64,000 nucleotides of DNA from Oculina patagonica (GCF_052425735.1 NC_135763.1:37448001-37512000), one strand, 5' to 3'; shown: positions 34,514 through 64,000, counted from the stretch's first letter. Made by a program: numbers and translations. The notes: generated by a model from the letters alone, not told the origin.

Positions 34514-34923
34514 TGTAGCTCTCTGATCTCTCGTCTCGTCTCGTCTCTGTTTTTGCTTTGTTTGATTTTATTTTTTTTCTGTGCTGCAGATGTCTTTAAA
34601 CTCCGAAGCATAAATGAGGGAGTGGTGAGACTGAGAAGCAATTACATTTCTTTTAATAAAGATATCTTAACAGGGAGTCCACGTCACAAAAATGTGGTTT
34701 TCAGTGGGGCTCTGCATAAAATAAATTACTTTACAAGTCATATTTTTAAAAGCTGATTTTTACAAATTTATTGTTATACTGGTATTAAAAAAACAAATAC
34801 AGGTATTAAAAAAACATTTTGAAGGTCCAATATTTCATGAGCTTTCAATGTGATTTGGCTTTTTAGGAAATGACTTTCGTCAACTTTGAATATGAACTTT
34901 TGATGTCTTTTAAGTTTATTCAA

Positions 34924-38827: not shown

Positions 38828-41800
38828 AGTAGCTCCGTCTGATCTATGGCAAAAAATTTCGTCTAACCTCAGTAGATTTCTTTTTATAGCCAAACGATCT
38901 GAGATGTGGATCGCTTAAGACCATTTACCGGTGTTGTAGGAGATGTTTTGATGTACTCAGCTGTCATGCTAAGGCGGAAATGAAATTTACGCTTTGTAAT
39001 TGAATTAGCCCTCAAAGTAAACTGAAAGTCACGTCATCTTTGAGTGGGGGCGTGGCCTGCTTATGCGTAAAATTAAGCCGAAAAGATATGAGAGGAATGG
39101 ACTGGACTTGATAAAAACGGCGTATTTTGGATTTCTTTTTTTCGTTTTATATCGAAAATGTTTTGAAGACCAAACTGATCAATTATGTATAGCCATGTAA
39201 TTACAATCGTCAAGCCCCTGTAGATAATGCATTTTGTCACAAATACAAGTACATAAGGTTCATTAGCCCCCACACTTGAAAAGTGAAAGGTCAACCTACA
39301 GTAGCTTGATCGTCATTCAAAGCTTTCCAGTTGAATTACGTACAGCTTTCTAGAACATATTACTCCAATTTCTAGAAACCTTCAATATGCTGACAGGATA
39401 AGCTACAGCTAAAACAATAAGCCACGCAATAAATGTAGCAAAAAATGACACAAATAGTATCCAGAATTTGCATGTTATAGCGTCATATCCTGCGGGGACA
39501 AGGTCAATTTCCTCGCTGCGTCGAGCCTTGACGGACGTGGGAAATTAGAAGTTTGCAAGCAGGATGTAAGTTTTAGCAGGGAAACAGAAATAACAAATGC
39601 TAATTGGACTGAGTGATGGTACAATTCAGGGATTAATCGAGCGAGTTATTTCAAAATTAGCCGAGCCAATTAAGTTACGAGTGTGATTGCTGCCTGAATT
39701 GGTTGACAAAATATCCAAATTGCGTAATCGTAGTAATTACAAAATTCGAGAAAGGGGAATTCTGTGATAACCTGTTTTAAGAAAACCATTCAGTGATATA
39801 TTTGATTAGTTTTACTGACAGAAAAGAAACAGCAGAGAAAACTCATTGAAGTGCACATGATGCGCGAATGACGTAATTAGTCATGCTGTAAACCTCTAAT
39901 TACGTAAGACAGCTATGTAATGAAAATAAAATTGACATTACTATGACAACGAGTTTGGTTGACGGCCAATACAGCAATAGAACAAATTGATTCAAAATCT
40001 GTAAAAGAGCTTAAAGCGGAAAACAAAATTAGAAAAATAAACAAACTTTAAGCACCTGCTGGGAGCTTTAACGGGAGTTGAAACAAAAATAACGAAACAA
40101 CAAAATGTATGCAAAGCTAGTTAATTTCTGAGACAGTTTGCTTAAACAAGGCCGCAAAAAATATCAAAAATAGAAATTTTATGCTAAGCTTAGTCTGAAA
40201 ACCTGAACGAGAATTAACACAAAAATAGCGAAAGCAACGCAACAGATGCTTGATCTTAAATAGCTTGCTCGAACATGAAAACATAAATGTAACGAAAGGA
40301 AAGCTGGAAACAGCGATTAAAGCCAAGGTCGTATCTGTAACTGCCGTGGGCATTGAAGTTCGAAATAGCAATTTACACTAACAGTTTTCTAACTAAGAAA
40401 AAGTCGAAAGCGACTGAATGCAGTACTGGACTTAAGTCACAAAACCATTGTTTACTTCTTAAGCTTTTTTCGAGCGAAAATGTTTTATGATACATTTCTC
40501 CCAGATGAAAGAGAACACAACGCGAGGGAAGTTAAACTATTGCGTTTTATTTTAATTTTCACCTCTACTTAGAGTAGATTGCTTTTTACATTTACATCAT
40601 CTTCTGTAAGTAACCTAGAGGAACTTAATATTAAACGGAATTAAATAACTTTGATTTAGCGTAAAGTTTACAAGGAGAACTGCGGGCATTTTTTAAGGCT
40701 CAACTTTGGTTGTTGTTGTGAGCGCGAGCGGTAGTTCCTCTTCTAATATTTAATGAGCGCGCAATTTTTGCAAACGTAACCTGTTCCAGGCGTTCGCCTG
40801 TAAACAGGCCATCGCCAAAGACGTTGCCAAGTAACATGACGTATTTTTTGACTTAAGCTGGCGAGTAGATTTTCGGAGTGGTCGCGAATGGTTGGTCTGA
40901 AATCTGATTGGATAAGAACAATCGGAAATTTTCCGGGTATTTGTTGCGAATGATACTCATTCCATCTATCGATGTGAAAAACGCCCTGTCAGTTACATGT
41001 ACTAAGCTCTAAATAAATATCACTTCTAGCTACCGTAATGATTCGTTTAGCGCCCGGGGCGCTTTTTTTTTTGCGCCTCGGGGGGGGCTTTGGGGGCTTG
41101 AGGGGGTTTTTATTTTTTTAAAAAAAAAAAAATATAAAAAAAAAAATTTAAAATATAAAAAAAATATTTGGGGGGGGGGGAAGGGGGGGATATTCTAGAC
41201 AAGAAATATACGCTTATTTGTATTTAGTGAAATATGGAATACCTAACATTTTAAATATACTAGATCTGTTAGCAAGCTACATCTGTGTGTAAAGATAACT
41301 TAAAGTTAGACCGTGGTTTTAAAAAATTAAAATTTAGAGTTTTAAATTTATTTCCGATAGTACATCTATCTTGAAAAAAAGACCCCGATTAAATGATTCC
41401 AAGATTTTTGTTCGTTACACCGGATTCTGATCGTAACCTGTGCCACTCACAAAGGACACAGACAATCCAGTGAACCAATCAAAACTCGAAGCAAACACAT
41501 GTATCCAGCACGAAGCGCGGGAAAAAGTGCGCAAGCGATTCATGATTGGTTTTGGTGTCACTTTTGATTGGTCGACAAAGTGGCGGGGATTTTTAATCCA
41601 GTCACTAAGCGTAGTAAAACAAAATCAAAGCAAATGCGAATTACTTTCGACACTCAAGTGAAACCGCTCTATATTGGAATTTTTTTTTTTACTTTTGAAA
41701 CATAGTCGAACCTCCCTAAGTGGACACTCTAGGGACCAGAAAGTACATGATTGTGTTGCATAGGTAAGACCTTGACAGTGTCTACTTACGTGAGGTGCAC

Positions 41801-42251: not shown

Positions 42252-45200
42252 TTATCCAACAGGCATCGCGTGCTCCGGGAAAAGAACCGGAGTCGCGACG
42301 ACACCAGCCCCAGTCTCGAACTTCCAAATAACGGATCCATCGTCACCGTGCAAAGCGTACACAAACTTATCAGAGCTAGCGGCGTACACCACATTATCAC
42401 GTGATACTGCTACCGATGCCACGACGTAGTCACGTGTTGTTGGTGACCATATATGGGAGCCGTCGGTTTGTTTGAGCGCCAAGATGCGGCCATCGCCTGA
42501 TCCAACAAAAACCTGCAATGTGAAAATACAAATTAAAGCGATGAGTACTTGAAACAAGAATAAGAGGTACAGGTCTGGTCTGTACTTCAGAAAGAAAACA
42601 ATGGGTGCATACTAAACTTGCAAGTCCAGCTAGTTCACATAAAGAAATAATTTTACCGATAACGAGTTACTTTGAATAGTCAGTCNNNNNNNNNNNNNNN
42701 NNNNNNNNNNNNNNNNNNNNNNNNNNNNNNNNNNNNNNNNNNNNNNNNNNNNNNNNNNNNNNNNNNNNNNNNNNNNNNNNNNNNNNNNNNNNNNNNNNNN
42801 NNNNNNNNNNNNNNNNNNNNNNNNNNNNNNNNNNNNNNNNNNNNNNNNNNNNNNNNNNNNNNNNNNNNNNNNNNNNNNNNNNNNNNNCGAGACAATCCTT
42901 ACTCACCCTCCCATCCTCAGTTATGACAGGTGACGACACCACCTCCCCACCAGTGTTCACCGTCCACTTGACTTTTCCCGCCAAAGGTCCATCTATGGTG
43001 TTCACAGCAATCAGCTGATCCTTGATCAAGCCAACATACAGTGTGCCATCCAACTTACTGACCACTGGGGACGACTCCACTTCAGACCCTGTGTCATGTG
43101 ACCAGTACAGCTTGCCTGATTCACGGTCTAGAGCGTAGATATTATGGTCTAGAGTCGCAAAGAACACGGTTTGACCGCCGGGCATGAGAGCAGGCGAGCC
43201 GTAAACGCTTCCGGCCCTGTCAAATTTCCAAGCAATTTCACCCGAGCTGGCTTTCAGAGCGAATACATGAGGCGTGTCCTGCGAGTCTGATGCGTTCGAT
43301 TTATCCGAGGTACAGCCGGTGAAGAGAAGCCCTTTCTCGTTGTCCACAGCAACAGCACCCCAGATAGGACAATGAAGGTCTGTTTTCCACAGAACGGACC
43401 CAGTTTTGCCATTCAAAGCATACACGTGCTTATCCTGCGACCCAACATAGACTGTCCCATCAAGACCCACTCTTGGGCTCGCCACAACGGCTCCTTCGGT
43501 CTTCAGTGTCCAGACTACGGATCCATTAGCTGCACCAAGGGCATAGACATTGCCATCATTGGAACCAAAATAAACGATCTCTTCGTCTTGGCTAAGAGCT
43601 GCAGATGACATGATCTTGCCAAGAGTTCGGTATTTCCAGATAACAGTCCCGCTGGCCGCGCTAAGTGCGTACATGTTGTGGTCTTCGGAGCCGACGAAAA
43701 CAAGTGGTTCGACTGACGAATCACCGCTGAGGTCTTCGTCATCTAACAAAAAAGAAAAAAGTGTCATTGAATGAATGTTATAGTAATTATCCTTTCAATT
43801 GAAAAGTTTCTTTTCCCTGTAAATGCAGTGACGTTAATCAATAATCAAATAAAGAATGACAGACTTTCATCCGGCGTTTGTCGTTTGTTGAGGTCCAAGT
43901 AATTTTCCTCGTTGGGAAGAGTAAGAAAACTCGAACAGTGTTTGATTTTCATTCACCAATCGCAAAACAGGACAAGCACTCGTAAAGAAAACAAAGGTTT
44001 CCCCGTCAGCTTGACGTCATAAATTTTATGTCATGTTGCGAAGCAACCGGTTGTAAGGAGACCGCGGGCTCAGGTACTTGTTTCCTCGGTAACAAAGGTA
44101 TATTGAACAATTCTGATATACACGTGAAGGTCAACTCACAGCACAATCCACAGCTTTCTTGACAGTTGATCAGCATCCAGTCAGGGTTTGATCTACATTC
44201 ACCAGAGGACGCCCACTGCTGACAGTTTGAATGTTTATCTGAGCAACCTAATTATCATTAACGAGGTCAAGTTAAGAATGGAGCTGGGATGCATTTCAGA
44301 GGCTATTTGAATAGCTAGATTTTTTTGATGACGTTACGCAAATTTAACTGTGCATTTGCTTTAAGGTTTTGAATTTTTTAGCTCTGTAATTTGGATAAAA
44401 AAAACTTATACACGTGCGCTTGTTACTGGTTACATTATTTTCCGCGCTTTTCATTAGTTCCGGTATTTTCCCGCGCTTGTCACAAATTACATGTTTTTCG
44501 CGCTTGCGACTAGTTAAGCCTGGATCTCATATGGTCGCCCGATCGTTTCTATCGCTTCGATCGTTTGCAAATACTGAGACGATCGTAGGCGATCGAAGCG
44601 ATTGGAAGCGATCGGGGGTTCTCATGTGATCGTCCCGATCGCCTTTATGGGCGAAGACCTACGAAAAACAATCATTTCAGCCCTAGATCCAACACAATGG
44701 CGGCCTTCAATGAAAGGACAAAACTCGTGGCCTCCTATCTTCTTAGTTATTGCAACTTACAGCAAAGGAGGGAGAGAGAAGCTAGAAGGATAGAACACGG
44801 GCGATCCAAGCGATCGTAATCGCCCCAATCGCCGCAGACGTTAGCGATCGTCTGTGTAATGATCTCATATACAATCGCCCCGATCGCTAAAAAACGTTTT
44901 GAAGTGACAGAGCCGACAGAAACGATCGGGGCGATTATATGAGAACCAGGCTTAACATGTTTCAGTTCTTGCGCTTGACAATAAATAAATGTTCCCACGT
45001 GCTTCGCCGCCCTCGCCATAAGTTATGTGTTGTCCCGCTCTTGTCACTAGAAACTAGTTACAAGTTTGACTGCGCTTGCCAATGGCTCAGTGTTTCCCCG
45101 CGCTTGTCAAAGGTTAAGTTTTGTTTTCCGCACTTGTCACTAGTTTATACGTGGTAACGCTTTGCACGAAAACACGCGATTCCTTGGTTTATAGTTACCC

Positions 45201-48200
45201 CTTTGGCGGGCCCTTTGGAAACTATATGTCAACTATAAACGTCGAAAAGGCTGTAGCCATAATTACCTAATCCTTTCTCCAGCTTCTGTTCCAAAGGATG
45301 GAATTCATAATCAGTGATGTTATTGAAATACTCGATTTCATCTTCATTAAGAGAAAAGTCCAAGGCTCGGAAATTCAAGTAAATATTTCTTGGATTCTTT
45401 GATCGTGGTATGACCGTCACGTTAACGTGAATGGCCCATCGTAGAACAACTTGTGAAGGAACAAACTCGTAATGGCTGGCAATCTCCAAGATCAGCGACG
45501 AACTTAGAACGGGATTTTTTTGCAAACCGTGGAAGTAAACCCATTGAAGGCCTGCAAAGAAAAGATCGCTACATCAGTTAAGGATTAAATTAACTTGAGT
45601 TGGCCTCACTACGTATAATTTTCGATGGCCTTTGTTGAAACTCAACGTTAGTAACGGACTCTTTTCAAGAACGCCCTTAACCTTGAAATACGTTTTCAGT
45701 GGTTTATCGAAGATCTTTATCAGACTCAAAGTGGAAACTTTATTTTTGTACAATGGTAAGAAGTAGTATTGTAAGTAGTGTATGTCTTGTTTTGTAACTA
45801 GTTATCCTCGTGGTGCAACAAAAAAAAGACGTTTTGCAAAACATTCGGAATAAAGCAGTTTCTTATTTTAATTTTTACCATGATTCTACCCCGTAACATT
45901 TACTTCTTAGGAAGCTAATTTTAGTTTGCCAAATAATGAATTAACGCTTTTTGGTCATAAAATCATAAGATACTAGTAAAAAATTTAAATACCGTATTTA
46001 TTCGATTAAGCGCCCTGGACCTTGAGGGTGGGCGCTTATTTGAGGTGGGCGCTTATTCGAGGCTGGGCGCTTTATTAAATTCTCTCCATTTTTAGCAAGT
46101 AGTACATTTATTTTGCAAGAAAACAATGTATAATAACTAAACCTGAAGAAGCTGAATTTTAACTGTTCATTGAAAGTTTCAGTAAAAAACTAAACAAACT
46201 CGGTCTTTGGGGTCGTCTATTAGTAGTAAGTAGTCAATTTCACTCTCAACTTCAATAATAATGAGTACTCCTCTTGTGCACTTCAGGGGTGGGGGGGGGG
46301 GGGGGGTTGGGCGCTTATTCGAGGTTGGGCGCTTAATCGAATAAATACGGTAATTTTTACGTACATTTGTATATTAAACTTACTGGAGCAGAAGTTTGAA
46401 CAAAGCCCCCCCCCCCCCCCCCCCCGTTCCTTTAAAACTGATACGTTCTTCTACTAAACAAAACATTGAATGTTGTGATGTTTTTAGCTCAAACTGGACG
46501 ACTATTACATAAGTTTACACAACAATAAAACAACTTACCAAGAGTTGAATATCCAATGTATCTAATGTTGTGCTCTTGGCAGAACTTCCTAACTGGACGA
46601 TCTTGATGAAACGGGTCAAACCAGTTTTGAACTGCAGACACTGGCACTGTAGCAAGTTGAACCAGTTCCTCCAGGTCTTGAGTGTCAAAGTTGCTGACGC
46701 CCAGACTGCGTAGCTTCCCTTTCTTTTGCATTTCCTCCATGGCCTTCCAGCTCTCTTGCCAAGTTCCCTTGGGCTCTCCTACAAAAGACAAAAAATTAAG
46801 AGTTTGTTGTTTGCAGGAAAACTTTGGTTTTTGGAAAGACGTTATGAAACAAACGTTTTGCTTAATATTCTAGGCCAGAATATTTAAAGTATGATTAAAC
46901 TAATCCACGATTAGCATGAATTTGGCTCTCAGTTTTTTTTAACTTTTCAGTGAGGTTTTCTGTTAATACAAGATAAATTGAACCTCAATCAACTTTAATC
47001 CTGGGTAAGTGTTAATTGGCTTTCGAATGACCCAGCCCTGGATGGAGAGTGAGGAACTCAAGGGTGTGCTCTAATTCTTAGAATAATTGCAGGGTGCCCG
47101 AAGGCTCTTCTGTAAGGAATCTTGGGTGTCCAGCCCATAAAAGCTTTCATGGCGGGTAGTACCTCACCCCACTAATTACTCCTGGTCTGTCATGCTACCC
47201 AAAGTGGATCTTACACTATAAGGTTTACACCAGTAAATTACAAAAGATAAAACTTGCCTTCTTCACATGTGAGAAGGAAGTCATCGCATTGCTGGGTGTG
47301 TATAAGAAACAAATCAATGTAGTCTGTTTTCAGAGATTGCAGAGACATCTCAATGGCCACCAAAGTTGTATCATATCCTAAATATTTGGGATGCAGTTTG
47401 GTCAGGATGAATATATCTGACCGAGGGATTCCACTCTGTTCAATGGCTTCAGCAACTAAAGGTTCTGAGCCAGGATATCCTTGGGCTGTGTCAATCAACC
47501 TATTGAGAGATTAAAGAATTCCTGTCATTGGATCAGAAACTTGCTCAATGTAGTCACACTTTGCAAACACTTAGCTACTACAGAGGGTCCATTACAAGGG
47601 GTTGTTCAGTCTGCAGACCATTTTTTTTTTCCTAGACTGCAAATTTCTTTTATTTTCTCCTGAAGACCAAGTCCGCCAAATATTTCTTAACTGTAGACTG
47701 CCAGATAATAAAGAAAGTGCATGCAGGGTGACGCCCAAAAAATGCCTTAAACTGCCAGAGTATAATATACCCTTAATATAGTCACCCTGTTATTACAGAC
47801 AGGAGTTTAAGTCCCAGAGAATAAGAATTACTGAAAATAACTTTCGCTACTTCAGACTTTCTCTACAGGCGCCAAATTGTAGTCTGGAAGGTGTCCATTA
47901 TAGTGGGAGTTGACTGTATATACTGACGGCAGTATAAACTACTACTAAATGAACAATGTACGATATGTTTTTATATTACTGGCATGCAGGGTATAGCAGA
48001 TATTAGAAGGTTTAATTTTTTCCTCTTTAAGCAGGAAAATGATATTTTGACTGATGGCTGTACTCACTTAAGGATACTGGAATGGTAAATTCAAGACTGC
48101 TAGATGATGAGACTGATATCTTTTCTGTGAACTAGCCTGGGACCTTCTTTAGCCTTGCAAAAAAAATCAAGACTCTGAGAATGCATCCCAGGCAAGTTTG

Positions 48201-51200
48201 AGATGACAAGACCCCTGAAACTTCGCTGACATTTTGCGAGACGCACATATCTTAAAGGACCATTCACCAACCCTTCACTTACAAGAAAGTTTAACTAACA
48301 ACCACATTCAATATGACTGTAATCACCTGTAGCCGACTTCAAGTGCTGCTTTAACAGCAGTAGTTGTGTTCTCCATCAGAGTAGCTGTACCAAAGCCCAT
48401 AACTGGCACTAAAGAGGGCAAAAAGAGAAAGCACACTAGTGAATGGGTCAATTATCAAGCAAGTACTTATATCAGCCATTTTGTTTACTTACTGGTAAAT
48501 TTGAATTGGACATGTTGCAGTTAATTTTTGATCTTAGTTAATTTTTTATTTCAACCTTTTTTCTAACAAGTTTTTAATATACTAATATTAAGTTGAAAAA
48601 GGAAAACACCTTCCCTCCCTTAATGTCTCATATCCCCCTCCCTACTATCTGCTATTATCCACATCCCCTAAGTACTATCATCTAATTTTCTTTTCTTTTT
48701 ACTAACCTGCACTGGATTTGAACTCTCAACCCCTTATCCACCTTGCCACGTAGGAAACGTTGGGTGAACCACTATTTTTTCAAAAAAAAAAATAGTATGT
48801 GACTCCAACCCATACCCTAACCCTATTATTTAACTATAAAATTATAAAAAATCAACTAGTTAGAAAATAACTAACTAGTAAAGTAAGAAATTAACTGAGA
48901 TAAAAAATTAACTGCAGCAGATACCCTAAACCATGGGGTCAATAACACGCACCTGACTGACTCACTCTGTGCCCAAACAGGTTTTTATCGATTACTATCA
49001 ATGACTTACTTGTGTATCCGCTTGCAAGTTTGACATCCGCTGGTCTCTCATTTCGTTTTGGAATCCTTAGGGGTCCACTGCTAGGATCGCTAGCATTGAT
49101 TTTTAGAATAGCGTTTAAGGCATGCTTCTCCTCTTGGCACTGAATCCTGTCTGGTTCATCTTGGACAAGCTTGTCGAACATCTCTGTTACCTACAAAATT
49201 AATGAAAATAATAAAATATGTTATGTACAATTCAAATCAAAATTTTACTTAACTGTCAAAAATTCTCTCAACTGTGAAAATTGTAAAAGAGCAACAGCTA
49301 TACCATAAAATTCCGGTCATAAGTCCCCCCCCCCCCCTTGCTTATAAGCCTCCCTGGTTATAGGCCCATCTACCTGGAAACAAACAAATACGTCCGGTTT
49401 TGCCCCCTCCCCCAGATATAGGCATCCCTCTGCTGGATGACAGTATTGAACAGGGCTAAATGGTGCTTTATTATGACTTTTTAACTTAAAAACCTTTTTC
49501 GATCAACAATACCATGGCTTTTTTCGAAACGTTTTTTATTCCGCTAATAATCCTCACCCGGATATAAGCCCCTCAGTTTATAAGATCACCCAAAACCCCT
49601 TACAAAATTGTAGAAGCCCAGGGCTTATAACCGGAATTTTACGTTATTGTATTGAGTGTACAAGTTACCTTTGTCACATCTGTGTCTTCAGAAATCCCTG
49701 CCTCAAGAAACTGCTTCTCAAAGTTAAACATTGCAAACCAGACATTGAGAGCAATGTTAGGAGCGTCATGTGATCGGACAATGTGCCACCAATATTGTGG
49801 GATATACAACATGTCACCTGTCAATCAGTTAGGTGGACTATGTTAGTTACCATCTGATGGACTGAATTTACCGTAACTTAACTCTCTAATTAAAAATACT
49901 AAAAAGTAAGCATTTTTAATTGTTCAAATAAATAATATTGCTTTAAGAAGACTGACTCTAAATCATGATTTCAATAGTTGGTCATGTTTTTTAAAGGCAA
50001 AGGTAAATGTATGGTGGAGGGGAACAGTCGGGGTGGGCTGGGGTGTGGCAGGATCCCCTTCGTAGAGCTGAGGGGCAGGAATTCTGTGGGAGGTGGGATT
50101 CCCAAGGAATATAAGGTCAGGTAAGTGGGAAGTTCACACTTCCCTGCCCCCCTCCCCCACAATGTTGTTTAATGGTATAACCACTAAAGCCACTTCCCTT
50201 CACCCACCTAATGATTATAGATCATTTTATATTAATAGTGAATTACGGAAATACGCTAGTATGAGTTAATTTCAAATATTAATAAAAATGTATGTGTTTT
50301 TGTAAGCTTGCTGGATTTACCTGTTATGAAAAGCTACTTAGCAGCTATTTTTGTTTAAACCACTCACCTTTATTCAAGGTTACTTCATAATAAGGCACAT
50401 CTGCTAGTTTTGGATAAGTCTCTAAGTCTAACTTTTCTGGATCAATTGACAACACTCCTGGGGCAATGGTAAACTGATCAGCATACAGTTCTTTACCGTA
50501 CGTGCTATTAATCAAGTAGACAGTCTTTGTTCCTGAGATGACAGTTATAATATTTTCCAATCCATCATGATGAAAGGCAGAATTAGCATCACCGCTATTA
50601 AATAACAGATTAAGGCTATCGATTGAAGAAGATATCTCATGGCAGTTTAAAACTGATGGTAAAATAATATCATTTAGCATAGGACTGTTTGGCGGAAAAG
50701 CAGAGTCCAGGTAAACATCTTCAGATTTATATATTTTCAGAAATTCTCCAAAAGAAAGCGGCTTCCTGACAGGGTGTTCATTCTTAAATTTCTTCCGATA
50801 TTCCACAGTAAAAATGTTAGACCCAAAATTTGACGCTAAATATGATTCATTTTGCCAGAGTTGTACAGCGGGCCAGTGGTTAGCGCCGTTCCTGATAACC
50901 ACAGGTTTCCTTTTGTGAATGTAGTTGTGGTAGAAGTCAGCGCCACTTGGAGCATACTTTAAACTTGCGATTTCACCTTCTGATGGCCTGTGTTCGCCGA
51001 AACGCTTCAGGTGGCCTGAACAGAAAATAGAATGGTCTGTGAGTTGATTACCAAAGTCAAACCATTCTTAGTAATTTAAATTGTTTTTAAAAAATGTATT
51101 GATATGTTAAATTATATAATTAATTACTATATTAATTTAGAGAAGAGGCCACATCAGCTCTAGCTGGTTTTCATGGGGGTCCTCTGTCCAGGTTGAATTG

Positions 51201-52933
51201 GAATTTGGAAATGTTGGTTTTACAGGAGAAAGGAAACTGGAGTACCCTGAGAAGAACCCTTAAAGGAAGGCAAGAATCGACAACAAACTCAACCCCCTTT
51301 AATGGCACCAGACTGGAATCAAACCTGAGCCACATTGGTGGGAGGTGAGCACTCTCGCCACTGCACCATCCCCACTCCCCAAGGCAGAGATGTGGATGGG
51401 TTGAGAGGAAAACTAAAGTATGGTGCAAACTAAACTCCAGTTAATTATTAATTTAAATTCAGTTTCTACCCTACCTTTCCTCTCAACCCATCTACCCCTC
51501 TGCTTTTAAATAAATTGACTGTAAAAACTGAAATAATTAAAAAAAAATTCTAAAATTTCAACCAATGAAAAATTGACACCTCACCCATTCATATTTATGT
51601 CTTGAACATAATAAATTCATAAAGAAATAAAAACTCAGTTTTTGTTGTCTTTTTGTGAGAGGCATGAAGGCAAATTGCATTCTGGATTATTCAGTGTTCT
51701 TGGGTGCAGTACCTCTCTCCTGGGAAGGGGCACCCTGCGAGCAGAGCCTCTTTTTACTTCCCTGCGGTTGAGATTTGAGAAGCAGAAAGAAGCTCTGCTT
51801 AAATCGTGTCATTTCTTTGAAGTCACCGCAGCCCCAAAGTTTGGGCTGGTCAGCCCAGATTAAACTGGTTTTTGTTGCGCAGGCATTATTTTTTTGGAAA
51901 AACTGATGGCCAACACGGAACCCACAGTATGCTCTCGAGAGCACTTGAGCTGACGATTGCTCTCGCCATCTACTACCGTTTGTGTGCGCGTGCAGCTTCT
52001 GGATCATTGAAGATCTGTTCTTTTTTTGCAAACCAAGAAGAAATTTCACGATTAAAATCACACATCTCTACCATAAAGTCACTAATACGACCTCAAGCAG
52101 TGCTTGACGTGTTTTTGTTCAAGGAAAGCAGATGCTTTTTGAAGAAAAGAACTTGTAAAACAAACACTTTGTTCACACTGTCGTGTACGATCCGACACGC
52201 CATTCTGTGCGCACATGCTAAGATTAAGTGGTCCTCGCGCAAGCTCAACAAAGATTTGACACGATTCTTGCAGAGCCCTTTCTTCTCAAGTATATCAGTG
52301 GAAAAGCTGGAAAGGGCTCTGCTTGCAGGGTGGGGAAGGGGGGAGGGTACTTGGAAAGTTTGGGTGGGAACCTGAGGGTGGGGGTGCTTTGCCAACCCAT
52401 CCACGTACCCACAAACCTTTTCTTTTCAGTGCTTCAAAAATATTGAATTTATCAGACTTAATTTCTTGGCTGTACTTATAGAAGCTTAATTCTTAAACAC
52501 CAAAAAAGTGGTGACCTCATTCGCTCAAAAAGGGGGTACTGTTAGCATTTATTTTAGAAGTTTAGCCGGCCCTTTTTGGTGGTGATTTAGAATTTACCAA
52601 AGCTTTAATAATTAAAGCGGAAATATTTCGTGTTAAAAGGCGTGTTAATTTTACGACTTAAAAAAACTTGTCTACAACCTTTGAAAACTTTTTAGCACAT
52701 CTATCGCTCGGTAGAGCGTTGAGCAGTAAGCTCAAATTAATTTGTAAAGCCACTATCAAAATAGCTGATTCATTAAGTTCAGAATACCTTTTTCCACGAT
52801 CCCGACACAGCCATCTTTGTCACAAAAGCCAGGAGATGAACCTTCAGTTAAGTACCACAGTGAAACAAAAGACAACAGAATGAAACAAGCGCCCGCCGGG
52901 AAAATATTTTCCCCTGTGAGCAATCAACAACAT
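42252..52933 (-). CDS. ~1058-aa secretory-pathway fusion protein: signal peptide, JmjC/cupin 2OG-Fe(II) oxygenase, aldo-keto reductase, ShKT, 8-bladed PQQ-type beta-propeller
   Basis: Exons 52933-52788 (needs a 1-nt correction), 51015-50368, 49817-49669, 49190-49010, 48408-48327, 47499-47258, 46778-46539, 45551-45267, 44247-44140, 43742-42907, 42512-42252. All ten junctions are phase-compatible. JmjC: FHHDGLEN, GDMLYIPQYWWHIV. AKR: MPVMGFGT, IDTAQGY, LTKL, DLFLIH, LGVSNF, VIPRS. Confidence 0.8.
42686..42887. other. Assembly gap (N run) in the last intron of the fusion gene
   Basis: About 200 N characters. Confidence 0.99.
44140..44247 (-). other. ShKT domain exon (phase 1-1) of the fusion gene
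   Basis: CSDKHSNCQQWASSGECRSNPDWMLINCQESCGLC has six Cys in ShK spacing. Flanked by a taattag acceptor and gtgagt donor; too short for the ORF track. Confidence 0.9.
44514..44955. mobile_element. Harbinger-like MITE with cgatcg subrepeats, inserted in a degenerate ttcccgcgcttg minisatellite (44410-45155)
   Basis: ttaagcctggatctcatat ... atatgagaaccaggcttaa. Confidence 0.7.
45992..46350. mobile_element. TA-flanked MITE with CCGTATTT TIR
   Basis: TA|ccgtatttattcgattaagcgccc ... gggcgcttaatcgaataaatacgg|TA. Confidence 0.8.
48513..48919. mobile_element. MITE with long TGTTGCAGTTAATT TIR, copy 1
   Basis: Closely similar to 58559-58996 and in the same orientation. Confidence 0.75.
49303..49644. 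mobile_element. TA-flanked MITE with tataagccc subrepeats
   Basis: ccataaaattccggtcataag ... cttataaccggaattttacg. Confidence 0.65.
51150..51375 (-). mobile_element. tRNA-derived SINE with a V-domain-like body
   Basis: Minus strand reads ggtgcagtggcgagagtgctcacctcccaccaatgtgg...tgagtttgttg...gggtactccagtttcc. Confidence 0.6.
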
Positions 52934-53642
52934 GGCCGAGTGCAAGCGTGAAACCAAATGATTTCCCTCAAAGTTTTGAACGACAGTAGCTAAAATAAAG
53001 CGTTCACTATCTTAAAGACGCCTTGAAGTAAAGTAAGTTATAAATAGTCAGCTGATTCTCTGCGGCCATCTGGTCGATTTCCATCTCCGATCAAAGCAAA
53101 TTTCCATAAAAGCTTTCTCCCACTTTCCTTCGTGCGCATAACGGAAGTTGCGTGACAATGTAAAGAGAATCTACTCTTCTATCATCACATCGCTGCAACA
53201 GCTTTTCCTTTCAACTCAAGCTTGAACAAGAATGAATTCCGAATTCTGCAAGGAACATACCGATTTCTCTAATCTTAAATATCGATAAAATTTAATCTCG
53301 CTGGCCCTTGGTATTTTTATTTTGGAATTGTTATAAATGCGTATAACTATTATTTTTTTTAGAATTGGTCACCAGTGGGGGCAGGTCGCTAAAACTTCCT
53401 GGTGGTCAGTTTTTCTGTCATCCTACGCTTGAAAATACATTAAGATGATTTAAGTTCATACTGTTGAAATCGTTCTCTTCCCTAAGAGTTTCTTTGGAAA
53501 CAAATTATGCATGAAGCGATAGCCTTTGTTTGTATTATCATATCAACAACTTCATTGTTGAGTAATCATAGGTTGATTAATTAACATATTCTCCAAACAT
53601 TTATAGCGCGCGCTGTTCGCGAACTTCTCAAACAAAACCAAC
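52934..53642. promoter_or_regulatory. Probable bidirectional promoter between the two secretory 2OG-oxygenase genes
   Basis: Divergent ATGs at 52933 (-) and 53643 (+), with no recognisable repeat between them. Confidence 0.5.
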
Positions 53643-56600
53643 ATGGCGCACGGAAGAGTGATGTGTCTGATAGTGCTTCTTTTCAGTGAGTTTTCTTCGT
53701 GCATCGCTGACAGTGCAGATCCGTCTGTGTGGGATGTTAAGGATAACACAAAGTTCGGTGTAGCTGAACCAAATCTAGAGGTAACTAGATGGTGTTGTGT
53801 GTTTTAGTGTGTTTGTTTTGCTTATTCGCGGGTTCTGATTTACACAAACAGGTAAAATTTTCAAGGACAGACAATACACTCTATGGGAGGGCATATATAT
53901 GAAATTTAGCGTCTTGTGTGCTGATCTTTGATGAACATAAGGCAAATTTTGATTCATGTTATTATATGGTCTTATATGAATTAAATCATTTATGCGGAAA
54001 TGGCATAAGCTTATGTGTAAACTTATCTGTATACAGGGATACAATCCTATAAAAAAACTGTTTAAGCCACAATTTTAAAACCTTATGAACTCGTTAAGAC
54101 TTAATACTGTCTTCATTTACCATTGATGTTTTTGAGCATACGTTCAGGTTAAGAGAAAAATTCTATGCATTTACGATTAAGTCCATTGTCGGGATTTTTT
54201 TTTCTTGAAAATTAAACAGGTTCAAAAAGATGAGCAAAAAATTCGCATTGCAAATAAACTTGTGAATCGTATAAATTATTTTATAAATCTTAAGTTTTAT
54301 CAGTTTGTCATCTCTATTGTTTCCTCAAATACAGCTGCTCAACTATTTTAGAATTATCATAATACTTAACAATCAGGCAAATTAGAAACTGTCAAACTGA
54401 ATTCACAATATATTTGCTCTCAAATTAAAAGTTTTACGAGAATATTATATTTCAGTTTACTTTAAAATGGATATTTACTAAGCTAAACAAAATTTATATT
54501 GTGTGGTTTTAGAACATTATGTTCCTACTCCCCCCCCCCCCACAGAAGGGATTGGAAATTCCTGGGGGTGGGAGGGGTCTCAAAGGCCAAGTTAGGAAAT
54601 GTATGAAGCTTGATTGGAATTATCAGAGGGGTGGGGGGGGGGGGGGTCTTAGAAAAAATCCCTTCCATGTGGCAGGTGTTGATAATTTTGGAACTACACA
54701 TTTTTAGTTTCAAGGTAGAAGCATGTGTATTCATTTGGTGGGATTTTTTTTATTAAAAACTAAGTGTTTAACCTAAAAATCACAATGAAATCGACTTCTT
54801 TTTTTATTATTATTTTTTTAGGATTCTGTGCTTGATGTTGACCTCACTTCACAAATCAGCTTCAGATACCAGACAAATGATGGCCGCAAAATTTTCGTCT
54901 TTGACAAGATTTTCAAACCAAGGCACCTCAGTATGTTCTCAGACTATTTAAATCTGGACTTGGGGTCGTGGCAGTTCAGGCTCTATGAACCATATGATGG
55001 TGGGGTTGAAAAGCCGACAGACAATATCCCATGGATAAATCCTGTAGATTGTGTAGAATTTTCTAGAACCCTAGTTGGAAAATCCATTCAAAAGGCAGTT
55101 ATGGATGCTGCTGGAACTGAAGATATTTACTATCCGTACAAAGTGAGAGGGAAAATTATGCGGCGAGGAGACTTCACACAACTGTTCACTGATGCTAACA
55201 GAACAGACGATGAGTATTCTGCTATGATGTTCTTGAATCCAAAGTGGAGAAAAAATGATTATGGTGAACTTTATTTGTAAGTTCCCTAGATTCTATCATT
55301 TTATAATTTAATAGTCAATTGTGGTGTGTATTGTTTAATTTGTAAGGGCCATTTTTTATGGTACAATTTTGTTAAGATTCGTCACATGCAACAAGCATAC
55401 AATGTATTACATGTCTATGAGATATTTTTTTTTTCATTTAAATCAAACCTACAAATTGTTTGGAAACATTTGCTGGGACAAAGTTGTAACAAAAATTTAT
55501 TAAACCTTTTTGTTAACAATGTTATTATGAAGGTTACGCTTTCGTCACTTGCATGTTATAATATAGTGGAACCCTGTTATTAATTAAGCCCTTGAGTGAT
55601 TTTTGTCCATTCAAAGGACCATTCAGGTGGAGGGGGACAGGAGGGTGCAGGAGCCCGGGAGGGAAGGGAGGGGGGAGGCAGGAGAATAGAGGGCAGGAAG
55701 TGGGATTCTTAAGTTGGCAGTGGAACCAGGAGAAATTGAAAAAAAAATGCAGCATTTTGTTATATTTTGCAAAAGAAATGGAACAAAGAGGAGAGAACCA
55801 CCACAGAAAGGGGCGGGAAGCGAGAGAAAAAAGTGTGAGAGGTTCAGACCCCTTGGAGATTTCTGTCCCCCTTTTAGTGGGCTTATTTTTGGGGGAGATG
55901 GGGGGCGGAAGGGGGAGTGGGGGTGGGAAATATCAGAATTTAATGGTAAATTTCTAAAACTCCTAAATATATTAGTTCTTGCTTTGAGTGGCTTAGAAGT
56001 GGAAGAAATATTTATATTTGGGATTAAGAAGGTGTATTTTTCAAGGGAAAAGGTTGGGTATTGCCAGGATTATGTGGATTACTGTAATTCATGTTTGTTG
56101 TTTATTCACGTTAATTCTTTTCCAGGTATGATGAGGACAATGAAATTGTTGCTGGAGCTGTTCCAAAGTTTGGTCGTGTAGTTGTTTGGCAGAGCTCCGT
56201 CGCGTACCTCCCAAGGCCACCAAGCATCGCTTTCAAGAAGGGGCAGCTGCTACTTCATGTACAATTCACAAAATCAAAGGAAAAAATGCTCCAAGACCAT
56301 GCGGAGATAGTGGCATCTAGAAACGAACGCAAAGCTGCATATGATGCAGGATTTATTGGAAGTGACAGGCCTGCCCCTGCCGACATTGATGTGGCAAAGC
56401 ATTTTGTTTCTGTGCATAAATCTTCACAAGGAAAGAAAATACTTGTGTTTGACGATCTTTTTGACAAGGAAGATTTGGATAAATTGCGTGCCTTCATATT
56501 CAAGCATGGTACATATTATTATGATGACAGTGATGAAGGTGATAACGATAGTGATAATGTTCAATGGATTGCAGGTTTTGAGATCAATGACTACATTCAA

Positions 56601-57672
56601 AGTAGGCTGTGGAACATTATGCAGCAGGTATGCGAGTCATTAATACCAAAACTAACCTTTTATTCTGAAGAGTGTTGAAAAACTGTAACTTGTCTTTAGA
56701 ATGTCAATACATTGTTAAGCTGGCACTGGTGACGAAAGTAAAGACACTGAATCTAACTTGAATTGCATATAGTATTACACAAAATATGATTTGGAGGCAG
56801 TTCGGCTGAGTGGTTAGAGCACTGCTCTTGAAATCCAAAGGTTACAGGTTCTGACCACTAGCTGACAGAGCTGCAAATAACAGTCAGTCATTGGACGTTT
56901 GCCGACGAAAATTTGCTAATGTCTGACAAAATCCCAAGTGTGGTCGGACATGATGTCAGGACAATTTTTTGATTGTAAATGCATGGTTCATCACAGCAAC
57001 GATGATTATTAAAATCTGTCAGACCACAATTTTGTTTTGTCCAACCAGTTTGGTGTCTAAGTAGGACATATGTCTTTCAAGTGACAAAAATTATTTGCAG
57101 CCCTGAGCTGGTATTGTTTCCATAGTCCCAAGTTTAACTCTTGGACTAGGATTGTAAATAGCCAACTAGTCTGCCTCCTGCCATTTTGAATCAAGTACAA
57201 TACCTGTTTTGTTTGTTTATATTGCCCCTGAAATGCCCCATTGGGGGAGTGGTCAATAAAGTTATATTATTAAATTTTTATTAACAGATAGCTCTCTTAC
57301 TGAAAATTGCTTTGCAGACTTTAAAACACATGACTGGGCGGGATAAGTGGTTTCCATATGACATCTCCTGTAACTTGATCAGAAGTGCTGACCACACACG
57401 TATTCACCAGGATTGTGAACCCCATGAGGATGAATGGACTTACCTCATATATCTAACACCAAACTGGACCAAGAATGACTATGGAGAAACTGCTTTCTAT
57501 GAGACAATGACTAACAACAATGAGATCATCACTGAGGTCCGGCCAAAGTATGGTCGAGCTGTAGTATTCCAAGGTAAGATCACATTACCCCACTATCAAT
57601 CAATTAAGACACAGGTTTGGGTGAAATATTGTTTAATGAGACAGGAACCCCAGGGGGGGGGGAGTTAATTTG

Positions 57673-57717
<45 letters not shown>

Positions 57718-60084
57718 AATACCAAAAAAAAAAAAAAAGGGCAAGATGATCGATCAATTATTTTTAATAACATTAATAACAAATTATTGTAGGGCTTGTG
57801 ACATAAGGAAGCCAACTGGCCACAGTTTAGTAGAAAATGCAGTCTGGTTTGAGCCCTGACAATGACCCCAGCCAGGACTCAAACTGGGACCGCTCAATCC
57901 CTATAGATAGGGAGACAAAAATGAGTGCTCTAACCATTAGACCACCCTGTCTCACTACCTAGATCAAGGAAAGCTGTCCATCCATCCAGCAGTCAACCTT
58001 CCCCTCTTTATCCTGAGCATTGTAAGAAGAATATGCATGGCTTGCACTAGGGTAGGAGCCCTATTCAAAGGTCTTTCTGGAAAAGAAAATGATATACAAG
58101 GAGAACAACCTGTAACAATATTGTAATAAAGCTTTTATCCAATGCTTTGACAAAGGCAGTTGAGTGAATGTCCATTAATAGCTCTTCTTTAAATAAATTT
58201 GTTCTTTCTTTTCCTGCCACAGGTATTATTCCTCATTCCGCCCGTCCACCCAGTACAAATCAATCACGTGCACGCCTCACCTTTGTTGCTAAAGTGTCTG
58301 TGAATGAGATGGTTGGTCGAGAAAAGGCGTTCAAAGAGGAAATGAGACACTTTCAGCCTTTAGTAATGTCAGAAAGTATGCCAGATTTGATGCATCGCAG
58401 TCAAGGTATGTGCTGAAAAAAGAGTAATCCTTTACCACCTAAGAATGTTGAAGTACAAGTTTGACATCTTTAAATGCAAAAATTTCCATTTGGGAAAAAA
58501 ATGGAAAGAAACAGTACCACATAAAATAACTGTTCAATAGCTTTCATTTGAATGGTTATGTTGCCAGTTAATTTTTGATCTCAGTTAATTTTTTATTTTA
58601 ACTAGTTAATTTTTTTTCTAACTAGTTTTTTTTTATTCTAGGTTAATAAGTAGAAAAAGTAGAACACCTCCCCTCCCTTGATATCTTATACCCCCCCCAT
58701 CCTTACTAACACTCCCCTACTATCTGCTGTTATCCTCCTCCCCTAAGTGATATCATTTATTTATTTTTATTTTTTACTAACCTGCACTGGATTTGAACTC
58801 TCAACCTCTGGATTTGCTGTCCAACCCCTTATCCACTGTGCCACGTAGGAAACGTTGGGTGAACCACTATTTTTTTCAAATATATGATACCCTAACCCTA
58901 ACCCCATTATTTAACTAGTTAAAAAAAATCAACTAGTTAGAAAAAACTAACTAGTTAAAATGAAAAATTAACTGAGATCAAAAATTAACTGCAACAGTTA
59001 CACACTAAGGTTCATTCACTTTAGATACGAGTTTAACTTGTAACACTTTGCACTTGTTTTAACTCTATCCCTGAAGGAAAAGCTTCATGCGACACAGTCT
59101 AACTCTTAGGTCACACTCTTGATCATCGTAGAGGGTAGCTAAATTGGGAAAAGAAGTTTTTTTCATTTCAAAAGCCTAGGCGTGGTTTCACGTGGTTTGG
59201 TACGCGGAAGCTAGTTCTCAGGACTCCCCTCTCACTAGGAGGTGTGAAGAAAAAATTCTGGGAACGAGTTTACGTACACACTTGCTCTTCAGCTTTTTAG
59301 ACATTTGGGCATATCTTGGTGTTGCGGAACTTATTGTTGGTTACCTTTTGTCAAAAGATGATCGCACTATCCACAACACCAAGAAACTCCAGAAAGTTTT
59401 ATTGCATCCTTTCTTTCAAAGTTCATTGTTGTGAAGTTATCAGCGATGTTGTGGGAATATTTCTCAGACTTTTGACATCAATAAAGAGGGTCCTGAAGGG
59501 GTAAATTGGAGGTTTTTTTTTTTGGAAATGGTTTGGGTAGGGGTAAGAAAAAAAAAGGGGAATAAAGAGAAATAGTATTAACGGAAAAGTGGTGCTGCAG
59601 AACGGAAAACGTTCAATGTAAGAACTTGGCACGATTTTACGGTCTTGCGAGCCTGGATAAGAAAGAGCTGGGTTTTTTTTTATTATTTTCTGTAATTTTC
59701 TTGATTTTCTATTGAAAGCGTTTTAATAACCAATTTTCTTTCCGCATTTATCATTTTCCTTATCAATCCACGTTTAAAATTTCAGACACGGACGAAAAAG
59801 AACCCGAGGCACAAGAAGAACAAACAGCAGACGGTGAGCATGAAGAAAGAGAATCCGAGCCGATGGATGAAGAGGAAGAGAACGAGGAAGAAGAGGATCC
59901 CAGAGAAGGCTTTACTGATGAGGAGGAGCCTGATCATCCTGTATTGAAAGAATTAAATCAAAAGCTAGAAGAAGTCAGGCAGAGTGGAAGCTTGGATCAA
60001 ATGAGAAATCTGCACAGCGAGCTTCATGCACGTCACGTGATGGCGAGACAGGAAGCTGTTAAACAAGTAGCGAATATGATTTAG
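53643..60084 (+). CDS. ~610-aa signal-peptide protein with two tandem prolyl-hydroxylase-like 2OG-Fe(II) oxygenase domains and an acidic C-terminal region
   Basis: Exons 53643-53780, 54822-55276, 56126-56627, 57318-57573, 58223-58405, 59786-60084 join in phase (1833 nt). N-terminus MAHGRVMCLIVLLFSEFSSCIA. Internal repeat: GRKIFVFD/GKKILVFD, DNIPWI/DNVQWI, W.KNDYGE twice, PKFGR/PKYGR. Domain 2 has IHQD, PHSARPP and RLT. Confidence 0.85.
56793..57260 (+). mobile_element. tRNA-derived SINE interrupted by a MITE (56866-57105)
   Basis: Head ggaggcagttcggctgagtggttagagc; the insert has TIR cagagctgcaaataa/ttatttgcagccctg flanked by agctga and agctgg. Confidence 0.6.
58559..58996. mobile_element. 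MITE with TGT...ACA termini and 4-bp TSD (GTTA), copy 2; Ginger2-like termini
   Basis: gtta|tgttgccagttaatttttgatctcag ... ctgagatcaaaaattaactgcaaca|gtta. Confidence 0.75.
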
Positions 60085-62381: not shown

Positions 62382-64000
62382 TCATTTCTTTGGTTCAGCG
62401 TCCTCTTCACTTGTTGGTACTAATTTATAATGTTCTTCACTGTCGTCTTTACCTTCTCTAAACCTTACAAACAAATGAGTGGACAAAAACAGAACCAAAA
62501 CGACAAGTGACGTCAGAGAGTAAATGAAATAAGTCCTGGCAACACCGACCCAGTTGATCAGAAGACCGCTGATCACTATGCCTGAGCCGACTCCGAGTCC
62601 CCAGTGACATCCACCCACAAAACCTGCAGTCAAACAAACATGAAGTTAGGGTCAGTTTACGTGGAAGGAGGGTAACCCTCCTAGAAGGATTACCCTTTTA
62701 GGAGGGTTAACCTCATCTATTGTTTTCCCCGCTTTCGTTAACATGCGAGGTAGGGTTTAAGCCATGTAAAACCTCGAGGTAGGTTTACCCTCCTAGGAGG
62801 GTCAAGTTCAGGACGATCAGATTACTGTCACATTCCCGCTAACTGTAAACATGGCTTCGCACAGTTATAAACCTGGAGAATCATTTCGGAGAACTTTGCT
62901 TGCAAAGCGGCAAATCCAAGCCAGGACGATGCAGAAAGTCAGAACGACAGTCAGTGCAATAGTTTGGCTGCTGGAATAGAATGTTCACGATCTTCTGCTG
63001 ATGTTCAATTAATAGGCGAAAGTCTTGATCAATACGAAGGTTCGGCAGACGGAGCCGTACTTGATCAGCCACGCAGTAAACTGAACAAAACGGAAAAGGA
63101 AAGCGGCTAATCGATCAGAGTTTTCGTCAAAAAAGTCGAAGAAGTGGACATGGGTGCCCGAGGCCGTTGAACTGCTTCAAAAATGTATCAACGAGTACAA
63201 GACACAGTGCGAATTTAACGGCTTCAGGTTTCCGTGGATTTTTTGGTGGAGTTTGCCCTAAGGATAACCCTACATGTAAAGGAGGGCTATCTTTTGACCT
63301 TTCTAGGAGGGTTTCCCTCCCTCCATGTAAGATCGCTGTTCAACTACTCGAACGCCTGAGAACAAGCTAAGATGTTGTCTTTATTTACCATCAATTTCTC
63401 AAAACTAACATTACAAGGAACCTACGGCAATCATGTAAGGAGAGTTAATATTCTGAATATTCACTTACCTTGGGTAGCTGAGTAGAAGCCAACTCGCAAG
63501 GACACAGTAGCACCAAACACCACACAGGCAGACCAGCTTACACCATACAATATTCCCTGGGCACTGAACAGTGCCACACCCAGCCAGGGGTTCAGGACAA
63601 ATGCCAGGCCCATGTACACCGCTCCATATAATGCTAAGCATATAGCTATGGTGCACACTAGTCCGAACTTGTTCATGATGACTCCTGATAAGACATATCC
63701 TAGTAAGGCTATAGTGTAGCGTATACCAGACGCAATGCCTAACATGTAGGGCTCAGCTCCGAGATCATCCAGATACCACAAACCAAAGTACTCGTGTAAG
63801 CCGATAAGGATCCCCAAATAACAAGCCACAATGATGAATATCGCGTTATGAAATTTCAGAAGCTCTTTGACTAATGGCAATAAATTAACATCTGTTGATG
63901 TCTCCTGATCTGGGTAGGTAACTTCCATGAAGGCAACAGTGAATATAGCAAGTGCCATGAATCCAGCAAAAAAATAAAACGAAATGAAATAGTTCTTTAC
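62382..64000 (-). CDS. 3' part of an MFSD6-like major facilitator superfamily transporter
   Basis: Exons >64000-63469 and 62623-62382, joined in phase 1. Many TM helices; WYLDDLGA and SATQG|FVGGCHWGLGVGSG resemble MFSD6 motifs. Confidence 0.8.
62646..63335. mobile_element. MITE in the last intron of the MFS gene
   Basis: ttacgtggaaggagggtaaccctcctagaagg ... cctttctaggagggtttccctccctccatgtaa inverted ends. Confidence 0.6.

Follow-up and report, generated by a model that had tools for sequence, protein, structure and literature searches.

A conserved bidirectional pair of genes for secretory protein-hydroxylase-like enzymes in the stony coral Oculina patagonica

A divergent gene pair kept in hexacorals

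Two genes encoding predicted secretory 2-oxoglutarate (2OG) oxygenases lie head to head in a 64,000-nt stretch of DNA, referred to here as the window (G000:C6:37448001-37512000 of a 529 Mb assembly; positions are counted from its first letter). The minus-strand gene consists of 11 exons and codes for a fusion protein of ~1058 residues, in which a predicted signal peptide is followed by a JmjC/Cupin_8 domain, an aldo-keto reductase (AKR), a ShK domain and an eight-bladed PQQ-type propeller. The plus-strand gene has 6 exons and encodes 610 residues, comprising a predicted signal peptide and two double-stranded beta-helix (DSBH) domains, of which only the second contains the HxD...H...R motif. 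The same divergent pair is found in Scleractinia of both lineages, Robusta and Complexa, as well as in the sea anemone Nematostella vectensis. The two genes are a conserved bidirectional pair encoding secretory protein-hydroxylase-like enzymes, not a demonstrated biosynthetic cluster. We assign a probability of about 0.5 to the reading that they are regulated together and that their products act jointly in secretory protein hydroxylation. Co-regulation and sequential action are plausible.

The DNA is eukaryotic, intron-rich and has a GC content of ~39%. All 610 residues of the Oculina patagonica protein XP_078374159.1 were reproduced exactly by the six plus-strand exons (53643-60084), which identified the window as coming from this stony coral of the robust clade.

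Neighbourhoods in other animals were looked up from orthologues of the plus-strand gene, over a range of 10 kb. In the complex-clade coral Porites lutea the orthologue is accompanied by a divergent gene for a 1059-residue fusion protein at a distance of 685 bp, with major facilitator superfamily (MFS) genes downstream as in the window. In Nematostella the divergent neighbour encodes 1035 residues with Cupin_8, AKR, ShK and propeller domains, the start codons are 1069 bp apart, and the gene downstream is mTOR; the JmjC exon of this fusion is 55% identical to that of the window gene. The pair is thus kept in Porites and Nematostella, with differing flanks in the latter, as expected of a conserved microsyntenic pair. 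Gene order is highly conserved among corals (complex/robust split ~415 Myr), and synteny between corals and anemones is limited (PMC6214176). The pairing in Porites was therefore to be expected, and Nematostella, with its changed flank, is the informative case. The pair was not described in the literature searched.

Attention had been drawn to the locus by an earlier note, made from the sequence, which interpreted it as a candidate biosynthetic or modification cluster and named lack of conserved linkage in related genomes as grounds for abandoning this idea. The linkage was found, with 685-1070 bp between the start codons, and the idea was not refuted. The observation underlying the note was confirmed, apart from a discrepancy at position 52881 (see below). 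The interpretation was partly supported, the two genes forming a conserved bidirectional pair and not yet an enzyme cluster.

The region between the start codons and its transcripts

The start codons are located at 52933 (minus strand) and 53643 (plus strand). The 709 bp between them (52934-53642), obtained from gene models and transcript contigs, agree with the ~710 bp given earlier, except that the boundary of the minus-strand gene had been placed one base off, at 52934. The runs from which the contigs came are labelled only 'RNA?'; the contigs skip introns at GT..AG and hence derive from spliced RNA. Contig mapping covered 50300-56299, the promoter side of the minus-strand gene. Contigs extended to 53114 on the minus side and to about 53664-53690 on the plus side, and the untranscribed part of the region is at most ~53115-53640 (~0.5 kb). 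The 5' untranslated region of the minus-strand gene is at least 52934-53114 long, as indicated by contigs reaching 53080 and 53114 (52935-53114). Divergent, with less than 1 kb between their transcription starts, the genes have the layout of a bidirectional-promoter pair.

Splicing was observed for both genes. A 1370-nt contig joined 50364-51014 to 52787-53080 (exon edges 50368/51015 and 52788), and the intron between them in the minus-strand gene (51016-52787, GT..AG on the minus strand) was spliced out. The join between exons 2 and 3 of the plus-strand gene (55276 to 56126/7, GT..AG) was present in contigs of three runs, and these contigs also held a piece stopping at the exon 1 donor near 53780. 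Spliced contigs of the two genes occurred in the same three runs, with depths of 40.8 versus 53, 4.5 versus 24.8 and 35-59 versus 54.5; contig depth is a poor measure of expression and n=3, and the figures indicate co-occurrence, not correlated expression.

A conserved non-coding block was found near the transcription start of the minus-strand gene (53034-53173; 71% identity to Porites over 152 nt). Motifs within it are CAGCTG, ATTTCCATA and an ETS-like CGGAAGT, the second of which, a 9-mer, is located 159-185 nt from the minus-strand start codon in Oculina, Porites and Nematostella. The promoters of the three species had two 9-mers in common, against 0.045 expected; one of the two is T-rich, and the excess is weak evidence.

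The transcript contigs diverged by ~1% from the window, and their source may be a close relative or sister taxon. In exon 1 of the plus-strand gene all three runs differed from the window at 53728, 53729 and 53738, one change converting Val29 to Ala, as in Porites; these differences suggest that the runs came from another population or a sister species. In the first introns of both genes (51100-52300 and 54500-54700) contig depth rose to hundreds to thousands and variants were many. These stretches are probably dispersed repeats transcribed elsewhere.

The plus-strand gene

Exon 1 (53643-53780) contains the start codon and the predicted signal peptide and corresponds to residues 1-46 of XP_078374159.1; a contig piece ends at its donor. 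Exon 2 (54822-55276), covered by contigs and 88-43% identical to family members, encodes the N-terminal part of the first DSBH, with FTD at the HxD position. Exon 3 (56127-56627), supported by the protein match, the contigs and the structural model, completes this domain, with Tyr in place of the distal His, and continues through an inter-domain helix into the start of the second domain. The core of the second DSBH, with H395 and D397 of the HxD motif in invariant columns, is in exon 4 (57313-57575), and the distal His455 and Arg468 are in exon 5 (58221-58404; protein match and alignment). The edges of these two exons are accurate within 2 nt. The piece encoded by exon 4 alone scored 33.4 and 30.2 bits against PF13640 and PF13661 (cut-offs 27), and all orthologues carry both families. 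Exon 6 (59785-60084; protein match) encodes an acidic tail, which is also present in the Nematostella orthologue, C-terminal helices and the stop.

In the alignment of 22 orthologues H395, D397, H455 and R468 are invariant. The first DSBH does not have the complete HxD...H triad, its distal position being Tyr in nearly all 22. The first position of its HxD motif is still His in Nematostella, an octocoral, sea stars, a hemichordate and a sponge (in the first three, HxD only, without the distal His), and has changed to F/Y in all scleractinians, to Y in amphioxus and to S in Trichoplax. A hydrophobic leader is present at the start of all 22 sequences. Both window products begin with a charged and a hydrophobic stretch, as do the 22 aligned orthologues of the plus-strand product and the Porites and Nematostella orthologues of the minus-strand product, in keeping with the N-terminal signal sequences proposed earlier. 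A KDEL-type ending was found in none of the 22 orthologues and on neither window product.

The AlphaFold2 model (pLDDT 78, pTM 0.75) consists of two jelly-roll domains connected by a long inter-domain helix, a disordered acidic stretch and C-terminal helices. A PDB sequence search with the Nematostella orthologue gave no match.

When exon 2 was searched against 1.84 billion representatives, only 92 clusters were obtained, the full-length ones comprising 500-670 residues with two matched stretches. Named relatives came from Nematostella, Porites, Montipora, Acropora, Oculina, an octocoral, amphioxus, hemichordates, echinoderms, tunicates, Trichoplax, a sponge and ctenophores. They are called 'uncharacterized' or, automatically, 'prolyl 4-hydroxylase alpha subunit domain'; some JGI names are 'Tpa1-like'. 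The named tandem-DSBH hits were thus confined to non-bilaterians and invertebrate deuterostomes; no vertebrate, arthropod, nematode, mollusc or annelid name was among them, an observation that does not prove absence.

Further tandem-DSBH paralogues are present in the Oculina genome at C1:36570814, C1:37292435, C1415:13227 and C6:38266972-38269870 (53% identity in the catalytic exon). The C1 copies are located in long open frames of 387-515 residues and may therefore be intronless.

The minus-strand gene

Exons 2-11, down to the stop at 42252, constitute a single uninterrupted frame of 1009 codons distributed over ten exons. Splice sites were selected by frame, GT/AG and blocks of nucleotide conservation with Porites. 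They are canonical across the ten exons, bar one GC-AG intron after 47258 (donor AAG/GCAAGT, 47256-47257, minus strand; the slash marks the exon end, which coincides with the end of a Porites-conserved block).

Exon 2 (50368-51015) encodes the N-terminal part of the JmjC/Cupin_8 domain with the GHLKxFGxHR motif and HxD (FHHDG), as supported by Pfam, a PDB match, the splice join and the alignment. Exon 3 (49669-49817), which matches Cupin_8 positions 218-250 and has 80% nucleotide identity to Porites, encodes the C-terminal strands with the distal His (WWHIV). The Pfam scores for PF13621 were 70.7 bits on 50348-50902 and 42 on 49639-49824 (cut-off 27.4). H148 and D150 are invariant in the JmjC alignment. 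JMJD5 was the best PDB sequence match to this domain (E 1e-14), followed by JMJD7. When the JmjC exon was used to search protein databases, only close, unnamed coral fragments were matched under the length and word limits of the search, and an ESM Atlas look-up yielded generic Cupin_8 clusters and nothing more specific. A profile of seven JmjC sequences matched Trichoplax, Ciona, an octocoral, Nematostella and a sea urchin, under uninformative names; neither JMJD8 nor a named JMJD8 orthologue was among its matches.

The JmjC and reductase parts are connected by exon 4 (49010-49190, 181 nt). This linker exon is in frame and 80% identical to Porites at the nucleotide level, and the introns beside it do not align, which argues for one transcript. 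Exons 5-8 (48327-48408, 47258-47499, 46539-46778 and 45267-45551) code for the aldo-keto reductase, as judged from the junctions and from three pieces matching PF00248 within 47498-45229 (29.5-72.7 bits, cut-off 24). Its Asp/Tyr/Lys/His tetrad is complete in the spliced translation (DTAQGY, LTKLH, LIHT). The translation of exon 9 (44140-44247) is a ShK (ShKT) domain with six cysteines; PF01549 is recorded for the Porites and Nematostella counterparts.

Exon 10 (42907-43742) encodes blades 1-6 and the start of blade 7 of the PQQ/ACSF4-type propeller, as counted from the repeats, and exon 11 (42252-42512) the last two blades and the stop. Beta-prop_ACSF4/PQQ matches were obtained on 43767-42888 (PF13570, 186.5 bits; also PF13360) and on 42557-42252. 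The intron between these exons (42513-42906) includes an assembly gap of 202 N (42686-42887). The gap begins 19 nt past a GTGAGT donor (GT 42906-42905; last exon base 42907), and the acceptor AG ends at 42513, the next exon base being 42512. Across the gap the translation reads ...SSPVITEDGR/VFVGSGDGRILAL..., in frame and with the blade-to-blade register of other blades, e.g. ...ASPRVGLDGTVYVGSQDKHVYAL.... Since frame and repeat register are kept, the gap appears to be intronic, with no coding sequence hidden in it.

The coding part of exon 1 (52788-52933) contains the ATG at 52933 and the predicted signal peptide, as supported by the spliced contig and the N-termini of the Porites and Nematostella proteins. 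In the assembly its frame is shifted by one base relative to the rest of the gene: translation from this ATG ends after 29 codons, and no ATG is present in the frame continuous with exon 2. Base 52881 was absent from transcript contigs of two studies. Without it, the ATG is followed by a 13-residue hydrophobic stretch and by ...SSPGFCDKDGC.GIVEKG/HLK.... The Porites protein has the same mature N-terminus (...SSPGFCDKDGC...) after an in-frame ATG and a long hydrophobic stretch, and the Nematostella counterpart starts with MGSNLCFILVLLLGYSLA.... These N-termini suggest that the signal peptide is real for the family. Position 52881 represents either a one-base assembly error or a real frameshift allele. 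The exon 1 model implied previously, using the assembled ATG frame and an early splice, was ruled out by the transcript contigs and the Porites frame.

The two oxygenases belong to different families (PF13621 versus PF13640/PF13661), and the earlier statement that the pair is not a tandem duplication was correct. The two hydroxylase sites and one reductase predicted with it were also recovered, in that HxD/His of the JmjC domain, D/Y/K/H of the AKR and HxD...H...R of the second DSBH are all present.

Linkage of related genes in a placozoan and a sponge

In Trichoplax sp. H2 a gene for a Cupin_8 protein of 573 residues is located between two tandem-DSBH genes, all on one strand and within 12 kb. 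The encoded protein has a signal peptide, the GHxxxxGxHR motif found in the window JmjC, an EF-hand-like motif, an acidic tail and a C-terminal RDEL. Its best Oculina match was a JmjC gene at C6:36.457 Mb (58% identity versus 34% for the window gene), and by this reciprocal search the Trichoplax protein was rejected as an orthologue of the window JmjC.

In the sponge Corticium a gene for a 504-residue Cupin_8 protein lies two genes from a tandem-DSBH gene. Its C-terminal exons, which end in an EF-hand-like motif and HDEL, matched the Oculina C6:36.45 Mb gene and the Trichoplax neighbour (36-44% identity, E 2e-5 to 6e-10); the assignment to the endoplasmic reticulum (ER)-type JmjC subfamily was made via these exons, with modest E-values. 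Two places in the whole Oculina genome were equal best matches for the main exon, C6:36.4518 Mb and a small unplaced contig (C1692). These sequence comparisons identify the Oculina C6:36.45 Mb gene as orthologous to the placozoan and sponge JmjC neighbours; it is located ~1 Mb from the window on the same chromosome. The gene (C6:36449000-36457226) is a secretory JmjC gene with EF-hand-like C-terminal exons, and one of its open frames ends in HTEL.

Thus the neighbour of the tandem-DSBH gene in hexacorals is the fusion, a secretory JmjC gene, and in a sponge and a placozoan it is a paralogous gene of the ER-type JmjC subfamily. Linkage of the two families is recurrent and probably ancient. By a rough estimate, well under 1% of genomes would have a member of a family of 5-15 genes no more than two genes away from a given gene. 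It is hard to credit three adjacencies of this kind to chance, with the qualification that an old linkage, once inherited, does not amount to three independent events. The other tandem-DSBH paralogues of Oculina (C1 and C6:38.27 Mb) had no JmjC neighbour.

A second locus in the genome, C2:44903354-44925821, contains a JmjC-only gene followed by another JmjC-AKR-propeller fusion, which is collinear with the window gene and shares 40-51% identity with it. The Oculina genome therefore has the four-domain architecture twice.

Comparison with known systems

The best full-length structural matches to the model of the plus-strand product were the uS12 prolyl hydroxylases Tpa1/OGFOD1 (Foldseek E 3e-12 to 3e-10 over 480-570 columns), which likewise have two tandem DSBH domains, one of them catalytic. 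In Tpa1/OGFOD1 the catalytic DSBH is N-terminal, and the proteins are nuclear or cytoplasmic. In the plus-strand product, by contrast, the catalytic domain is C-terminal, and there are a predicted signal peptide and an acidic tail; the full-length TM-score was low (0.22-0.29) and no PDB chain was matched by sequence. With its reversed domain order and signal peptide, the product does not belong to the Tpa1/OGFOD1 family. Its second domain shares HxD...H...R with PHD2/EGLN1 and the collagen-type prolyl 4-hydroxylases (PF13640) and can be superposed on PHD2 (TM-score by target 0.56-0.63), but identity is 14-19%, an extra non-catalytic DSBH is present, and there is no PDI-binding or peptide-substrate domain.

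The JmjC domain of the minus-strand product resembles JMJD5, JMJD7 and JMJD8 in its Cupin_8 fold, HxD and distal His. JMJD8 is a JmjC-only, ER-resident protein with a signal peptide (PMC5684140). The window protein differs from all three in being fused to a reductase, ShK and propeller, and in belonging to an invertebrate family with the GHxxxxGxHR motif after the signal peptide.

Luminal 2OG oxygenases assembled with non-catalytic partners are found in the collagen-modifying complexes of the ER (P3H1/CRTAP/PPIB; P4H alpha plus PDI). P3H1 was among the structural matches of the plus-strand product, at rank 48. Homology of the window products to these enzymes is limited to the DSBH core, and they lack the KDEL-type signal.

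As an arrangement of genes, the pair can be compared with PDI/RhoGDI, conserved bidirectional pairs that represent ancient metazoan microsynteny (PMC5722932). Common features are the divergent orientation, start codons separated by less than 1 kb, retention over deep divergences and pairing at the level of families, paralogues included. The difference is that both partners here are uncharacterised secretory 2OG oxygenases.

Possible function and alternative explanations

Both families are uncharacterised, the named orthologues being annotated as 'uncharacterized protein', yet they are found from sponges to tunicates and have the residues expected of active 2OG oxygenases of the secretory pathway. 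To our knowledge, little is known about oxygen-dependent modification of secreted animal proteins beyond the hydroxylation of collagen and EGF domains. The pair has persisted in hexacorals for about half a billion years and has echoes in a placozoan and a sponge, which leads to a concrete hypothesis, namely that the enzymes work together.

According to the reading of joint action, the genes would share a bidirectional promoter and be co-expressed. Their products would be protein hydroxylases of one secretory compartment, the JmjC enzyme acting on Lys/Arg-type and the DSBH enzyme on Pro-type residues, and would modify the same secreted or matrix substrates or function as a complex. The incomplete first DSBH, the ShK domain and the propeller could serve as binding modules, and the linkage of the two families would be ancient and maintained by selection. 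A more far-reaching version, which we regard as rather unlikely, is that the two families constitute a two-enzyme module older than the split between sponges, placozoans and cnidarians, whose genes are neighbours because the products act together, possibly as a complex, in luminal or extracellular protein hydroxylation, the hexacoral JmjC having captured the reductase, ShK and propeller.

Several observations weigh against joint action or speak for neutral retention, in which an ordinary bidirectional promoter holds together two functionally unrelated enzymes, breaks within the 0.7 kb being harmful, and the arrangements in Trichoplax and the sponge arose by coincidence or are remnants of an old linkage group. 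Cis-regulatory constraints by themselves make head-to-head pairs resistant to breakage. The fusion/tandem-DSBH pair was not found within 10 kb in five lineages outside Hexacorallia: in the octocoral Dendronephthya the neighbours are a PH-domain gene and VPS13, and no Cupin_8 gene is close to the tandem-DSBH gene there or in the amphioxus Branchiostoma lanceolatum, the sea star Patiria, the hemichordate Ptychodera or the ctenophore Mnemiopsis. In most phyla the tandem-DSBH enzyme therefore does without the fusion as a neighbour, and its family, being far wider than Hexacorallia, is independent of the fusion gene. The JmjC neighbours in Trichoplax and the sponge are paralogues of the window JmjC (30-34% identity, versus 51-58% to the C6:36.45 Mb gene) and are differently oriented, and the recurrence could be an old cluster or coincidence. 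The separation of the Oculina ER-type JmjC gene from the tandem-DSBH gene by 1 Mb on the same chromosome fits the gradual erosion of an old linkage. In the 40 kb examined around the paralogous fusion on C2 (44.906-44.926 Mb), no P4H-like gene was found, either in the 20 kb upstream or inside the locus. Because gene order changes little among corals in general (PMC6214176), the comparison that carries weight is the one with Nematostella alone. Neutral retention is a strong rival and quite possible. It is less easily reconciled with the proximity, in three lineages, of a secretory JmjC gene to a tandem-DSBH gene (5 kb at most), roughly estimated to be expected in ~0.1-0.5% of genomes, with the persistence of the pair in Nematostella despite rearranged flanks, and with the fact that both products are secretory 2OG oxygenases, which is unexpected for random neighbours.

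The earlier note had left open whether the substrate is a protein, a lipid or a metabolite. A protein is favoured by the nearest characterised relatives of the two oxygenase domains (JMJD5/7, PHD2 and Tpa1/OGFOD1), which hydroxylate proteins, and a lipid or metabolite is disfavoured. We consider it improbable that the locus is a small-molecule biosynthetic cluster of the kind found in microbes and plants, with oxygenases and reductase acting consecutively on a lipid or metabolite. The 18 kb do encode two oxygenases and an NAD(P)H-type reductase, three catalytic domains that differ in type, and AKRs usually act on small carbonyl compounds. On the other hand there are only two genes, with no transporter or scaffold enzyme, the downstream MFS genes are not kept in Nematostella, and ShK and propeller are typical extracellular protein-binding modules.

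That no functional pair exists, the minus-strand gene being several genes or a pseudogene created by the frameshift at 52881, is most improbable. Such an artefact might be suspected from the out-of-frame ATG at 52933 and the lack of an ATG in the correct frame, and from the position of the JmjC-to-AKR splice outside the 50300-56299 segment used for transcript mapping. It is contradicted by the continuous 1009-codon frame over ten exons, by conservation of the linker exon at the nucleotide level, by the independent four-domain gene models of Nematostella (1035 residues) and Porites (1059 residues), by the collinear paralogue on C2 and by the in-frame version present in transcript contigs.

Nematostella, which has the pair and is genetically accessible, offers a tractable system. 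If joint action holds, the pair would represent a luminal hydroxylation system not described before and one of the few instances in animals of enzyme genes linked by function; if the coupling fails, it would be one more conserved bidirectional promoter.

Neighbouring genes

An MFS transporter gene (62385-64000, minus strand) lies downstream of the plus-strand gene. MFS genes have the same location in Porites, but not in Nematostella, where mTOR takes this place. NUDT8-like exons and a long low-complexity gene are also present in the window and, like the MFS gene, are unrelated to the oxygenase pair. The same is true of two closely related, tandem single-exon G protein-coupled receptor genes on the minus strand (33584-34567 and 37811-38914), which at ~33.5-39 kb are placed upstream of the 3' end of the minus-strand gene.

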